Assembly: GCA_004764695.1 (NCBI GenBank)
Contig: SMSO01000034.1
Span: 1,860,001-1,924,000, forward strand
DNA: 64,000 nucleotides
DNA from: Schizochytrium sp. TIO01
Lineage: Eukaryota; Protista; Bigyra: Labyrinthulomycetes
Reading direction: 5' to 3'
Under the pieces are notes generated by a model that saw only the letters and a program-made list of their open reading frames with translations, had not been told where the DNA came from and searched no databases. Each line of letters opens with the position of its first letter. Within the stretch, counting starts at the first letter, position 1. Position numbers and translations under genes: made by a program. This document shows, in pieces, positions 52,877 through 60,889 of the stretch.

Positions 52877-55800
52877 ATGTCGGACCACCCACGTGTTGTC
52901 GCTGCCCTTGAAAAGCTTCAGAATGGCGCTACACGATTGAAGTAAGTTAACACTCTACTCGCTTGCTCGCTTGCTCGCTTGCTTGCTCGCTTGCTTGCTT
53001 GCTTGCTTGCTTGCTTGCTTGCTTGCTTGCTTGCTTGCTTGCTTGCTTGCTTGCTTGCTTGCTTGCTTGCTTGCTTGCTTGCTTGCTTGCTTGCTTGCTT
53101 GCTTGCTTGCTTGCTTGCTTGCTTGCTTGCTTGCTTGCTTGCTTGCTTGCTTGCTTGCTTGCTTGCTTGCTTGCTTTATTTGACCGGTGTTGCTTTTGTT
53201 GTTATTGTTTTGCAAGTTTATGCAATGGCTGGTTTGTTTGTTTGTTTGTTTGTTTGATGGATGGATGGATGGATGAATGGATAAGTTGTCTGTTTGAGTG
53301 AGTATACATCCATCGAACAAAGAGCAAAATGACAACACAACAAAGATAAATGCTGAAAGCCAACCTAGAGCACTCACGTCCATGCATGCATGCGTGCATC
53401 TATTGTAATATGTAACGTGTAATGTATTGCTTGCCATCATTCAATCAAATCGACAGTCTTCAAGACAACCTGATCGGCTCAGAGGGCGCCAAGTCAGTGG
53501 CTGCGGCGCTGAGAGAGAACCGGTCGCTGACATCACTCAAGTAAGTTGTCTACACAACACCGCAGCTCATGAACTTGTGTGTACATGACGCTTGTTTCGT
53601 TGGTTGTTATTTTGGTCGGTGTTGTTTTGCAAGTTTATGCAATCGGTTGTTTGTTTGATGGATGGATAAGTTGTCTAATTGACTGAGTACGCATCCATCG
53701 AACAAAGAGCAAAATGAAAACACAACAAAGATGAAATCCTGAAATCCTGAAATCCAACCTAGATCACTCACGGCCATGCATGCATGCGTACCTCTAATGC
53801 AATGTAATGTATTTCTTGCCATGATTCAATCAAATCGACAGTCTTGGAAACAACTTCATCCGCGACGAGGGCGCCAAGGCAGTGGGTGCAGCGCTGAAAG
53901 AGAACCGGTCGCTGACATCACTATCGTAAGTTGTCTTTACAGCACCGCAGCTTAAACATGATGCTTGCGTTGCACGTTGTTGTTTTGCACGGTGTTGTTT
54001 TGCAAGTTCATTCAATCTCTTCTTTACTTGTTTGATGGTTGGATGGAGGGATGCATAAGTTGTCTGTCTGTTTGACTGAGTATGCATCCATCGAACAAAG
54101 AGCACAACGAAAACACAACAAAGATGAGATCCTTAAATCCAACCTAGATCACTCACGCCTATGCATGCATGCGTACATCTAATGCAATGTAATGTATTGC
54201 TTGCCATCATTCAATCAAATCGACAGTCTTGGAGGCAACTACATCGTCGACAAGGGCGCCAAGTCAGTGGCTGCGGCGCTGAGAGAGAACCGGTCGCTGA
54301 CATCACTTGAGTAAGTTGTCTACACAACACCGCAGCTCATGAACTTGTGTGTACATGACGCTTGTTTCGTTGGTTGTTATTTTGGTCGGTGTTGTTTTGC
54401 AAGTTTATGCAATCGGTTGTTTGTTTGATGGATGGATAAGTTGTCTAATTGACTGAGTACGCATCCATCGAACAAAGAGCAAAATGAAAACACAACAAAG
54501 ATGAAATCCTGAAATCCAACCTAGATCACTCACGGCCATGCATGCATGCGTACCTCTAATGCAATGTAATGTATTGCTTGCCATGATTCAATCAAATCGA
54601 CAGTCTTGGAAACAACTCCATCGGCGACGAGGGCGCCAAGGCAGTGGGTGCAGCGCTGAAAGAGAACCGGTCGCTGACATCACTATCGTAAGTTTTCATA
54701 GCTCATGGACTTGCTTGTACATGATGCTTGCTTCGTTGGTGTGTTGTTTTGGTCGGTGTTGTTTTCCAAGTTTGTGGAAGCGGTTGTTTGTTTGATGGAT
54801 GGATAAGTTGTCTGTTTGACTGAATATGCATCCATCGAACAGAGAGCAATATGAAAACACAACAAAGATGAAATTCTGAAAGCCAACCTAGATCACTCAC
54901 GTCCATGCATGCATGCGTGCATCTCATGCAATGTAAATTATTGCTTGCCATCATTCAATCAAATCGACAGTCTTGGAAGCAACCAGATCAGCTCAGAGGG
55001 CGCCAAGGCAGTGGGTGCGGCGCTGAAAGAGAACCGGTCGCTGACATCACTTGAGTAAGTTGTCTTAGCTCATGGACTTGCTTGTACATGATGCTTGCTT
55101 CGTTGTTGTGTTTTTATGGTCGGTTTTGTTTTGCATGTTTATAGATCGCTTGTTTGTTTGATGAATGTAGAAGTTGTCAGTTTGACTGAGCATGCATCCA
55201 TCGAACAAAAAGCAAAATGACAACAAAACAAAGATGAAATCCTGAAAGCCAACCTAGATCACTCACGTCCATGCATGCATGCATGCATCTCATGCAATGT
55301 AAATTATTGCTTGCCATCATTCAATCAAATCGACAGTCTTGGAAGCAACCAGATCAGCTCAGAGGGCGCCAAGGCAGTGGGTGCGGCGCTGAAAGAGAAC
55401 CGGTCGCTGACATCACTTGAGTAAGTTGTCTTAGCTCATGGACTTGCTTGTACATGATGCTTGCTTCGTTGTTGTGTTTTTATGGTCGGTTTTGTTTTGC
55501 ATGGTTATAGATCGCTTGTTTGTTTGATGAATGTAGAAGTTGTCAGTTTGACTGAGCATGCATCCATCGAACAAAAAGCAAAATGACAACAAAACAAAGA
55601 TGAAATCCTGAAAGCCAACCTAGATCACTCACGTCCATGCATGCATGCGTGCATCTATTGTAATATGTAACGTGTAATGTATTGCTTGCCATCATTCAAT
55701 CAAATCGACAGTCTTGGAAGCAACCAGATCAGCTCAGAGGGCGCCAAGGCAGTGGGTGCGGCGCTGAAAGAGAACCGGTCGCTGACATCACTTGAGTAAG

Positions 55801-58800: not shown

Positions 58801-60889
58801 TTTGTGTATGATGCTTGCTTTGTTGGTGTGTTGTTTTGCACGGTGGTGTTTTGCAAATTTATGCAATCGGTTGTTTGCTGGTTTGGTGGGTGGATAAGTT
58901 GTCTGTTTGAAGAAGTTTGCACCCATCGAGCAAAGAGCAAAATGAACACAAAGATGAAATCCTGAAAGCCAACCTAGATCACTCACTCACGTCCATGCAT
59001 GCATGCGTACATCTATTGTAATATGTAACATGTAATGTATTGCTTGCCATCATTCAATCAAATCGACAGTCTTACTGCGAACAATATCGGCGACGAGGGC
59101 GCCAAGGCAGTGGGTGCGGCGCTGAAAGAGAATCGGTCGCTGACATCACTCATGTAAGTTATCTAAGCAACACCCCAGCTCATGGACTTGTTTGTACATG
59201 ATACTTGCTTGCTCCGTTGGTGTGTTGTTCTGGTCGGTGTTGTTTTTATTAAGTTTATGCATTTGCTTAATTAATTGACAGGTGGAGAATTTGTCTGTTT
59301 GACTGAGTATGCATCTATCGAACAACGAGCGAAATCACATCACGACGAAGATCAAATCCCGAAAGCCAACCTAGATCACTCACGTCCATGCATGTATCCA
59401 ATGTAATGCAATGTAATGTGATGTATTGCTTGCCATCATTCAATCAAATCGACAGGCTTCATGCCAACAATATCAGTGATGAGGGCGCCAAGGCAGTGGG
59501 TGCGGCGCTGAAAGAGAACCGTTCGCTGACATCACTTTAGTAAGTTGTCTTAGCAACAGCGCAGCTCATGAACTTGTTCGTACGTGATGCTTGCTTCGTT
59601 GGTGTGTTGTTTTGGTTGATGTTATTTTTCAAGTTTATGCAATCGTTTGTTTGTTTGATGGATGGATAAGTTCTCTGTTTGACTGAGTATGCATCCATCG
59701 AACAAAGAGGAAAATGACAACACAACAAAGATGAAATCCTGAACGTCAACCTAGATCACTCACGTCAATGTATACGTGCATCTAATACAATGTAATGTAT
59801 TGCTTGCCATCATTCAATCAAATCGACAGTCTTGGGTCGAACAAAATTGGCGACGAGGGCGCCAAGGCATTGGGTGCGGCGCTGAAAGAGAATCGGTCGC
59901 TGACATCACTTGAGTAAGTTTTCTAAGCACCACCCCAGCGCATGGACTTGCTTGGACATGATGCTTGCTTCGTTGGTGTGTTGTTTTGGCTAATGTAGTT
60001 TTTCAAGTTTATGCAATCGCTTGATTGTTTAATGGATGGATACGTTGTCTGTTTGAGTGAGTATACATCCATCGAACGAACAGCAAAATGACAACACAAC
60101 AAAGATGAAATCCTGCAAACCAACCGAAATCACTGACGTTCATGCATGCATGCATCTAATGCAATGTAATGTATTGCTTGCCATCATCCAATCAAATCGA
60201 CAGTCTTAGAGGCAACCAGATCGGCGACGAGGGCGCCAAGGCAGCGGCTGCGGCGCTGAAAGAAAACTGGTCGCTGACATCACTTGAGTAAGTTAATTTA
60301 GTAAACCCCCTTGGACTTGTTGGTACACGAACCATGTGTGCTTGGTGTGTTGGAATGCACGATGTTGTTTCGTCCAGTTTTGTTTTGCAAGTTTGCGCGA
60401 TTGCTTGTTCGCTTGATTCTGTTTAAGCTTTTATGGTTGTGGTGGATCTAACAGAGAACACGACCACATCAAAGGAGAAATGAAATGGTACTATCATTCC
60501 TTTGGTACCTTAGATGAGGTTCAATTGTTAACTGACGAACGGAGTTGATGCTATCTGGTTTGCTAATTCTTAGATTAACCTTGAGCCATGAAGGAGAGAG
60601 GGAGCTCGACTTGAATGAAGAGATTTATTATGCAAAGACACGAAGGACACGTCTTGAGCAGATCTCTCGTGAGCTTGGTTGTATACATGCTGTAATCAAT
60701 GCACTTTCTATGCCATCTTCAGTGAAACTCAGTCGTTCTGGACAGAGTCTGCTTGCTAGCAGTAATGGTGAGGAGAGCTCGAAAGAGGAATTTCTTGCTA
60801 CGCAGAAAGTAGAGCTTGATACATTGGAAGCTTTAATCGTTGCCTTTAGTGAATCATTGGGATTGCTGGGCCCTTACATTTTTGAATGA
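52877..60889 (+). CDS. Modular RI/NLRC3-type leucine-rich repeat protein, 21 exons, predicted 658 aa with 19 LRRs
   Basis: Exon 1 is 52877-52941 (MSDHPRVVAALEKLQNGATRL, phase 2). 19 exons of exactly 84 nt start at 53457, 53842, 54227, 54604, 54971, 55337, 55712, 56087, 56467, 56837, 57211, 57570, 57944, 58306, 58680, 59070, 59456, 59830 and 60204, each bounded by gacag| and |gtaagt and coding xLxxNxIxxEGAKAVGAALKENRSLTSL. Last exon is 60574-60889 (phase-2 acceptor). Total 1977 nt, in frame, no internal stops. Confidence 0.9.
52957..53175. repeat. (GCTT)n microsatellite in intron 1 of the LRR gene
   Basis: About 50 GCTT units; source of the LACL/KQAS ORF artefacts. Confidence 0.95.
53180..60300 (+). 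repeat. Tandem array of 19 exon+intron units, period 359-390 bp
   Basis: Recurrent intron blocks gctcatg.acttg, gatggatggataag, catccatcgaacaaa, ccaacctagatcactcac, catgcatgcatg and ttgcttgccatcattcaatcaaatcgacag precede the LRR exons, with minor variants. Confidence 0.97.

Follow-up and report, generated by a model that had tools for sequence, protein, structure and literature searches.

The closest published parallel to the locus described here comes from brown algae, in which exon-shuffled LRR genes occur; LRR-ROCO and LRR-only loci of this kind are known from Ectocarpus and Saccharina (PMC3341825, PMC11378527). In Aurantiochytrium limacinum, whose genome of ~62 Mb has TTAGG telomeres, the elements named LORE-TEARS are tandem 366-529-bp units (Group 0, ~385 bp) beside 5S rRNA genes, and they were published as non-coding and without database similarity (bioRxiv 10.1101/2023.06.15.545109). 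Lamprey-type VLRs are modular LRR solenoids with diversity on the concave face; their germline gene is incomplete until flanking cassettes are added to it somatically, and the proteins are secreted or anchored in the membrane. In the genes of ribonuclease inhibitor (RI) and of the NOD/NLRC proteins the exons also match whole repeat units. The LRRs of these proteins, 28-29 residues long (LxxLxLxxNxIgdeGa, then a helix), form cytosolic horseshoe binders; the literature searched yielded nothing usable on whether NLRC genes have LRR exons of 84 bp.

The window (the whole stretch of 64,000 nucleotides from Schizochytrium sp. TIO01 that was analysed) corresponds to 1.86-1.92 Mb on a 4.85-Mb contig. 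Tandem Repeats Finder called a single array at the locus (53272-60294; period 374, 18.7 copies, 82% matches), and a script scan for open 84-nt exons with AG and GTAAG borders returned exactly 19 exons with a start-to-start spacing of 359-390 bp. Each of the 19 is composed of 1 + 81 + 2 nt and therefore every intron is in phase 2. The first-pass annotation, made from the letters of the window, had proposed 19 such exons with one 28-aa LRR each and introns that are repeats of one another, and both proposals were confirmed. All acceptors end in ...gacag and all donors begin with gtaagt; the 20 splice-site pairs are all intact and none of the 19 LRR exons is interrupted. The array is bounded by a 65-nt first exon on the 5' side and a 316-nt last exon on the 3' side (21 exons in total), the last exon is in frame with the split codon from exon 20, and an in-frame stop at 52799 lies 78 nt 5' of the ATG of exon 1. 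Neither LRR-like exons nor LRR-like motifs were found outside the 19 exons on either strand of the window, and in an Rfam scan of the gene region (E up to 1) the introns gave no matches and no sign of intron-borne snoRNAs or similar. The features are as follows; LRR exons 2 to 20 are all 84 nt long and open, with AG/GTAAG borders, and joints are those found in assembled contigs.

52290..52408, reverse strand: 5S rRNA gene (Rfam RF00001), pointing away from the LRR gene
52409..52876, no strand: spacer from the 5S gene to exon 1, presumed to carry the LRR-gene promoter and 5' UTR, 77-94% identical to its counterpart at 15 paralogous loci
52877..52941, forward strand: exon 1, N-cap, 65 nt (21 codons + 2 nt), ATG at its start and a gtaagt donor after it, phase 2
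52942..53456, forward strand: intron 1, with a (GCTT)54 microsatellite at 52961-53176
53457..53540, forward strand: LRR exon 2
53842..53925, forward strand: LRR exon 3
54227..54310, forward strand: LRR exon 4
54604..54687, forward strand: LRR exon 5
54971..55054, forward strand: LRR exon 6
55337..55420, forward strand: LRR exon 7
55712..55795, forward strand: LRR exon 8
56087..56170, forward strand: LRR exon 9
56467..56550, forward strand: LRR exon 10
56837..56920, forward strand: LRR exon 11
57211..57294, forward strand: LRR exon 12
57570..57653, forward strand: LRR exon 13
57944..58027, forward strand: LRR exon 14, spanned entirely by a contig with 0 mismatches
58306..58389, forward strand: LRR exon 15, joints 58027>58306 and 58389>58680
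58680..58763, forward strand: LRR exon 16, joint 58389>58680
59070..59153, forward strand: LRR exon 17, joint 59153>59456
59456..59539, forward strand: LRR exon 18, joint 59153>59456
59830..59913, forward strand: LRR exon 19, joint 59913>60204
60204..60287, forward strand: LRR exon 20, joints 59913>60204 and 60287>60574
60574..60889, forward strand: last exon, encoding the split codon and a family-specific 104-aa tail, stop TGA at 60887-60889, joint 60287>60574

The locus is a real spliced and expressed 21-exon gene and not a mere 374-bp satellite. Splicing was assessed in contigs from the runs X17, X21 and X22, taken to be RNA, against the DNA run X1 (the run kinds are guesses, and X17 was flagged 'probably DNA'). 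Five distinct GT..AG joints lie exactly at predicted exon borders in X17, X21 and X22 together, and none of them was found in X1. The joints 58027>58306 and 58389>58680 were each present in X17, X21 and X22, 59153>59456 in X22, 59913>60204 in X17 and X21, and 60287>60574, which connects exon 20 to the last exon, in three runs. One X22 contig joins the 3' end of exon 1 to an exon-2-like exon, and the tail contigs fit this gene with 0-1 mismatch, the nearest paralogue tail being only 91% identical. Tail sequence was also identified in the MMETSP transcripts P0001 and P0002, i.e., the family is transcribed elsewhere too.

Judged by their sequence, the repeats are LRRs of the ribonuclease-inhibitor type, in agreement with the class first assigned to them: all 19 are 28 codons long, as in the 28-29-residue RI-like class. 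The protein profile, structure-match and folding work was done exon by exon. Pfam LRR_6 was the sole match for 6/6 single exons tested (13.8-21.3 bits, gathering cut-off 23.4), and only profile positions 10-24 fit because the exon border splits the profile. One 27-aa exon matched solved RI-like chains repeat after repeat (E 2.5e-11 to 1.5e-4), among them a ribonuclease-inhibitor-like protein, NOD2 (5irl), porcine ribonuclease inhibitor (1dfj), RSP15 and DRC5; the top matches were axonemal LRR proteins, which are structural rather than immune. Neither a signal peptide nor a membrane anchor is present in the gene product, the hydrophobicity of which never reaches transmembrane level (as the first-pass annotation had it). 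No NACHT/NB-ARC or other signalling domain occurs between exon 1 and the tail, and the sequence leaves no space for NACHT, ROCO or kinase regions, since exon 1 directly precedes the LRRs and is itself preceded by the in-frame stop and, 470 bp upstream, by the 5S gene. The protein is stand-alone and probably cytosolic, and its description as an LRR protein devoid of these three domains stands. It differs from ribonuclease inhibitor and the NLRC proteins in belonging to a multigene family with hypervariable positions, in lacking NACHT or any other signalling domain, and in being encoded by single-repeat exons separated by homologous introns.

The tail is nearly missing from public protein sets. 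It matched no Pfam family, nothing among the sequences of solved structures below E 0.37, nothing in Foldseek at E 0.001 or better (generic helical hairpins only), and in a protein atlas low-recognition matches only; as it has no known relative, no signalling output can be named. Its predicted fold is a helical hairpin with helices at 5-45 and 70-102 (pLDDT 72.7), and a homodimer prediction gave a score of 0.01, which is no answer and weighs neither way. The tail may couple binding to a partner.

Searches of the 64-Mb genome place the gene in a family of about 100 paralogues, which together have close to a thousand single-repeat exons: the exon-end pattern had 956 matches (0 for the control), whole units at least 413, and the tail exon 101, nearly all of them open. 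The statement of the first-pass annotation that the N-cap and C-terminal exons are unique applies within the locus but not to the genome, where both are conserved modules of this ~100-gene family. Among the 16 closest relatives the number of LRR exons ranges from 3 to 20, and a 65-nt exon 1 with a near-identical peptide is present in 11 (shorter versions of 59-62 nt in 3 more). Matches to the units of the window, at 82-87%, occur in arrays near many contig ends. In pairwise comparison the introns of the array are on average 83-86% identical to one another, compared with 82% to arrays on other contigs, and array-specific homogenisation, which had been assumed at first, was ruled out (0.83 within vs 0.82 to other arrays).

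The 5S rRNA gene (RF00001, 96.5 bits vs a gathering score of 38, full length) lies on the opposite strand, head-to-head with the LRR gene, and 14 of the 16 paralogues have an identical 5S copy at a distance of 460-580 bp upstream of their exon 1. Neither the 5S pairing nor the paralogue family figured in the first-pass annotation. 18S and 28S genes are absent from the 64-kb window.

Variation within the repeats is concentrated at four positions (x5, x7, x8 and x10 of LxxLxLxxNxI), with an entropy of 2.6-3.5 bits there and below 1.3 elsewhere (160 exons from 12 paralogues), and 151 of these 160 exons encode a unique 28-mer. Nucleotide diversity at the hypervariable codons is 0.55, compared with 0.147 in introns (a nearly fourfold difference) and 0.10 at the third positions of conserved codons, which are synonymous-type sites (fivefold). 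Outside the hypervariable codons the exon has a diversity of 0.066, below the intron value, which indicates purifying selection on the protein. In recent segmental duplicates, hypervariable-codon changes amounted to 5/480 vs 65/10984 in introns (pooled, p 0.22), and no consistent excess was found in L036/L037/L026, L039/L040 or L042/L043, so ongoing positive selection lacks support; the hypervariability could in part be old diversity shielded from conversion. The units are mosaics with breakpoints inside exons: a patch of ~450 bp (53483-53932) is near-identical to its counterpart two units on, with flanks that differ by ~25%, and units 11 and 13 differ at 8/20 nt in the hypervariable segment vs 8/354 elsewhere (Fisher p 1.5e-7). 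Together with the relatives of 3-20 exons, the mosaic units bear out the proposed gain, loss and exchange of cassettes over evolutionary time.

Against the brown-algal genes, which are likewise from stramenopiles, the locus shares one LRR per exon, introns exclusively in phase 2, gain and loss of tandem LRR exons, about four hypervariable or positively selected positions on the strand face, and the occurrence of LRR-only genes, there alongside multidomain ones. It differs in several respects: the exons are 84 nt long and encode 28-aa RI-type repeats (72 nt and 24 aa in brown algae), the introns are homologous and form with the exons a regular tandem unit of 360-390 bp, no inverted or dead LRR exons occur in the introns (both strands of the window), a private helical tail is found but no ROC-COR, and the family of ~100 genes is linked to 5S rRNA genes.

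Our preferred reading, which we regard as probable, is that this spliced and expressed gene encodes a stand-alone and probably cytosolic RI-type LRR binder and belongs to a germline-diversified family. The gene consists of a short conserved N-cap exon, 19 LRR exons with one repeat each and an exon for a conserved C-terminal part of ~100 aa, predicted to be a helical hairpin. The arrays would expand, contract and exchange segments in the germline through unequal crossing-over and gene conversion, with breakpoints in the 3' two-thirds of the exons, where the sequence hardly varies; phase-2 symmetry keeps all recombination products in frame. Each repeat retains a fixed scaffold and varies at four positions, which lie in the beta-strand and the ascending loop, so that the family would act as an inherited repertoire of binding surfaces. 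The ligands may be foreign or fast-evolving molecules: proteins of viruses or bacteria, for instance, or enzymes that would be inhibited in the manner of ribonuclease inhibitor.

An LRR family with a structural or scaffold function and no recognition role (e.g., axonemal or cytoskeletal RI-like LRR proteins of the zoospore), in which the variable positions are unconstrained surface residues, would fit the best matches of a single exon, which are axonemal (radial spoke protein 15, DRC5, LRRC34) and to tropomodulin/leiomodin, as well as the gene model without a signalling domain and the recent duplicates without excess change at hypervariable codons. We consider it unlikely, since the diversity at these codons exceeds the neutral proxy, and ~100 paralogues with 3-20 repeats, nearly all of the sampled repeats being unique, are unlike single-copy structural LRR proteins. 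Least credible of all, with hardly any weight in our judgement, is a satellite without coding function (a spacer repeat of the LORE-TEARS type that serves rDNA or chromosome ends) with an incidental open frame, or a decaying pseudogene with noise transcription: unspliced last-intron contigs do occur in the same runs as the spliced ones, but against this stand the spliced contigs themselves, the open exons and intact splice sites, the purifying selection on the conserved exon part, and the start and tail exons conserved in ~100 mostly open copies. The locus resembles LORE-TEARS in its 359-390-bp units beside a 5S gene; its unit, however, is the exon plus intron of a spliced gene, and this copy lies 1.9 Mb inside the contig, with only a 26-bp (GGTTA)5 run nearby, and not in a subtelomeric position between 5S and 18S.

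That one locus yields many proteins per cell lineage, by combinatorial splicing or programmed cassette rearrangement, is the stronger form of what the first-pass annotation proposed and appears very improbable to us. Any subset of exons of 84 nt, in phase 2 and with near-identical splice sites, would be in frame, and brown-algal one-LRR-per-exon genes were reported to be alternatively spliced (PMC11378527). All exact GT..AG joints, however, connect adjacent exons, in contigs of ~100 nt that are too short for isoforms either way. A few joints that skip several exons were listed (e.g., 57293>57944 and 57291>59070), but they end 1-3 nt short of the exon end and were not counted, because their sides of 20-28 nt fall in the exon end common to most units; misplacement or paralogue transcripts fit them equally well. 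Moreover, in contrast to the lamprey VLR gene, the germline gene is complete, with neighbouring exons spliced in order and diversity inherited across paralogues, and its product bears no signal peptide or anchor.

An extension of the germline-diversified reading, doubtful at present, places the LRR genes within the 5S rDNA unit itself. The recombination by which rDNA copies stay similar would then also carry LRR cassettes between the ~100 loci and rearrange them. In this protist, rDNA recombination would thereby generate germline diversity for a set of cytosolic recognition proteins, to which alternative use of the symmetric exons might add. The linkage of coding diversity to 5S rDNA units is unusual. 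Thraustochytrids, which are abundant as decomposers in the sea, are used industrially for oil and host mirusvirus-like elements; to our knowledge nothing is known about how they recognise pathogens. About 100 genes with variation on the likely binding surface amount to a testable candidate for a repertoire of immune type in an organism that is neither animal nor plant, and to a second, independent stramenopile instance of the one-repeat-per-exon design. Arrays of a kind published as non-coding spacers are here spliced genes, and annotators should be aware that genes can hide in regular satellites.

Elsewhere in the window, an ORF at 62997-63965 (reverse strand) looked copia-like by eye and was set aside, having no Pfam match at E 0.001.

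The predicted LRR gene lies at 52877-60889 (+), next to a 5S rRNA gene that the first-pass annotation had overlooked; its 19 LRR exons (exons 2-20) are framed by a first exon and a last exon encoding a C-terminal tail.

52290-52408, minus strand: 5S rRNA gene (Rfam, full length, 96.5 bits)
52877-52941, plus strand: exon 1, 65 nt, beginning at the first in-frame ATG past a stop at 52799
60574-60889, plus strand: last exon, frame carried via a split codon to TGA

A single tandem array was identified at 53272-60294 by Tandem Repeats Finder (period 374, 18.7 copies, 82% matches), and a script requiring AG, 84 nt in open frame and GTAAG found exactly 19 LRR exons in it, spaced 359-390 bp apart. 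The exons are laid out as 1 + 81 + 2 nt, so that every intron is in phase 2; all acceptors end in ...gacag and all donors begin with gtaagt. Each exon encodes one 28-residue repeat (x-L-x-x-N-x-I-x-x-E-G-A-K-A-V-G-A-A-L-K-E-N-R-S-L-T-S-L). With the start of exon 1, 19 open LRR exons and a last exon in frame to TGA, the 21-exon model proposed earlier is therefore correct as sequence anatomy. Intron 1 is largely filled by a (GCTT)54 microsatellite (52961-53176, 97% matches) followed by (GTTT)6 at 53232-53256; in paralogues, exon 1 and the first LRR exon are ~260 to 880 bp apart, so that intron 1 looks like a hotspot of length variation.

Logan contigs of X17, X21 and X22 (three studies, taken as RNA) and of X1 (taken as DNA), the kind of each run being a guess, were aligned to 55100-61000. 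Five joints were recovered, each with GT..AG ends and each matching a predicted exon border exactly.

58027>58306: three runs
58389>58680: three runs
59153>59456: X22
59913>60204: two runs
60287>60574: three runs

No spliced joint was found in X1, although it holds most of the locus, and the gene is thus spliced as predicted. A loose end in X22 has the final 30 letters of exon 1 directly before an exon-2-like exon. Contigs of the tail exon match at 0-1 mismatch, while protein identity to the closest paralogous tail is only 91%; the signal therefore comes from this gene. The last intron is also represented by unspliced contigs in the same RNA-guess runs. At a length of ~100 nt the contigs cannot reveal isoforms, and joints skipping several exons, whose 20-28-nt sides sit in the exon end common to most units (a unit being one LRR exon plus its intron), were discounted.

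Within the array, exon relationships and intron relationships disagree. The introns after exons 2 and 4 are ~97-100% identical and the exons themselves 85%; exons 2 and 9 share 98% and their introns 82%; exon 13 resembles exons 6-8 (98%), but its intron resembles that of exon 11 (97%). At base level, a ~450-bp patch (53483-53932) is all but identical to the equivalent stretch two units further along, with flanks ~25% different, and units 11 and 13 differ at 8/20 nt in the hypervariable segment and at 8/354 elsewhere (p 1.5e-7). Both comparisons place breakpoints inside exons, where the variable 5' third gives way to the 3' two-thirds that do not vary. Being the longest stretch common to all units, the invariant part would be a natural substrate for unequal exchange and conversion. 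These conflicts agree with the cassette shuffling over evolutionary time that had been proposed. The array had also been called homogenised, which is overstated: apart from visible local duplications (units 6-8; 2 and 4; 11 and 13; the two-unit block 9-10 versus 17-18), unit identity is 0.83 within the array and 0.82 to units of other arrays.

Nucleotide diversity within the array is 0.55 in the 12 nt of the split codon plus codons 3, 4 and 6, 0.066 in the rest of the exon, 0.10 at third positions of conserved codons and 0.147 in the introns (best kept in their final 30 nt, ~0.05). The constrained exon part is thus more conserved than the intron, whereas the four variable positions are far more diverse. 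Among 160 exons (12 non-redundant paralogues), 151 encode unique 28-mers, and entropy reaches 2.6, 3.5, 3.2 and 3.1 bits at repeat positions 1, 3, 4 and 6, all others being below 1.3. These correspond to x5, x7, x8 and x10 of LxxLxLxxNxI in the usual LRR numbering; in LRR structures the first three lie in the solvent-exposed xxLxLxx strand segment and x10 starts the ascending loop. That combination marks a protein held by purifying selection whose surface has diversified. Very recent duplicates showed no consistent excess of change at the four variable codons, so ongoing positive selection is not demonstrated.

The gene belongs to a large family. One whole unit had at least 413 matches (82-87% identity) on many contigs of the own genome, in which 956 copies of the conserved exon end with its donor were counted (reversed control, 0). 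The C-terminal exon, previously described as unique, has 101 matches in this genome (35-91% identity, nearly all open). LRR exon counts in the 16 closest paralogues, some of which are segmental duplicates, were 3, 7, 9, 9, 11, 11, 11, 11, 13, 13, 14, 20, 20, 20 and 20, compared with 19 here. A first exon was recognisable in 14 of the 16 (11 of 65 nt with a near-identical peptide, one of 62 nt, and two of 59 nt with a different N-terminus). Outside the own genome, HMMER against 1.84 billion representatives found the tail in only two clusters at E < 1e-10, both built on MMETSP transcripts (one a 250-aa protein with LRRs then the tail), and a word-based search of 5.8 billion clusters added no further relatives; the family is thus transcribed, yet nearly missing from public protein sets.

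The 5S gene lies 470 bp upstream of the ATG and points away from it. A full-length identical 5S copy is found 460-580 bp upstream of the first exon in 14 of the 16 paralogous loci and a 57-nt 5S fragment in one more, and the spacer between 5S and exon 1 shows 77-94% conservation across 15 loci. A family unit therefore consists of a 5S gene, a spacer and an LRR gene. At three loci, L036 (3911-4190; contig C5, ~1792710-1792990), L037 and L026, two tandem 5S copies (119 nt at 100% and 115 nt at 99%) stand in place of one. In A. limacinum, ~385-bp "Group 0" spacer repeats without reported database similarity adjoin 5S genes (bioRxiv 10.1101/2023.06.15.545109), a description that the unit found here fits. 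Relative to these LORE-TEARS, published as non-coding, the copy studied here lies in the interior of its contig; the window has neither 18S nor 28S genes.

Scanned singly, 6/6 exons matched Pfam LRR_6, all of them under the cut-off, since the profile is interrupted by the exon border; a single exon is enough to match solved RI-like LRR chains (NOD2, ribonuclease inhibitor, axonemal LRR proteins). No segment of the product is hydrophobic enough for a signal peptide or membrane span, as had been noted from the sequence. A model from 23 family sequences (pLDDT 72.7) predicts that the tail folds into a hairpin of two helices (5-45 and 70-102) whose loop is disordered; its C-terminal motif LG-x-LG-P-Y is invariant. 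The tail had no relatives by sequence, features or fold.

Of the earlier interpretation as a diversifying receptor, a real, spliced, stand-alone gene shuffled over evolutionary time stands; combinatorial splicing and somatic diversification are hypotheses. The gene is best read as a member of a family of cytosolic binders, diversified in the germline and coupled to 5S rDNA units, presumably with a function in recognition. The closest published system is the exon-shuffled LRR genes of brown algae (PMC3341825, PMC11378527). There each 72-nt exon, in phase 2, holds a single LRR; about four sites on the strand face are under selection, transcripts are alternatively spliced, and the architecture is either ROC-COR or LRR-only. 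The design principle is common to both, but the thraustochytrid family differs in repeat class and length, has introns homologous to one another, which gives a regular, satellite-like unit, lacks intronic dead exons, and is set apart by its private tail, family size and 5S linkage. Lacking NACHT, the gene is not an NLR and, being complete in the germline, not a VLR-type system. We found no LRR family from thraustochytrids and no reading of LORE-TEARS as genes in the papers searched.

Near-identical family members lie inverted on the same contig, 30-90 kb apart (C30, 5483499-5483810 (+) and 5516576-5516887 (-); C34, 2837806-2845622 (+) and 2928307-2932395 (-)), and between L037 and L026 there are 13 differences in 3949 aligned bases; this points to recent inverted segmental duplications large enough to carry whole LRR genes. 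The 5S-LRR modules also occur at several internal places of large contigs (e.g., C13 at 4.0, 5.7 and 7.15-7.3 Mb). Contigs C30 (9.8 Mb), C31 (9.0 Mb) and C13 (7.5 Mb) are far above expectation for 26 chromosomes and ~62 Mb, the A. limacinum genome size (bioRxiv 10.1101/2023.06.15.545109); either the assembly joins chromosome ends or the strain or karyotype is different. Upstream of the 5S gene are two long ORFs, 51128-51757 (-; 209 aa) and 45295-46104 (-; 269 aa, hydrophobic), with no Pfam family. A 322-aa ORF at 62997-63965 (-) looks by eye like the C-terminal part (reverse transcriptase plus RNase H) of a copia-type retroelement, with no Pfam match at E ≤ 0.001. About 2 kb downstream of the LRR gene, inside the contig, a (GGTTA)5 run (62934-62959), a rotated form of TTAGG, the telomere repeat reported for Aurantiochytrium (bioRxiv 10.1101/2023.06.15.545109), may be the trace of a former chromosome end or of a fusion.
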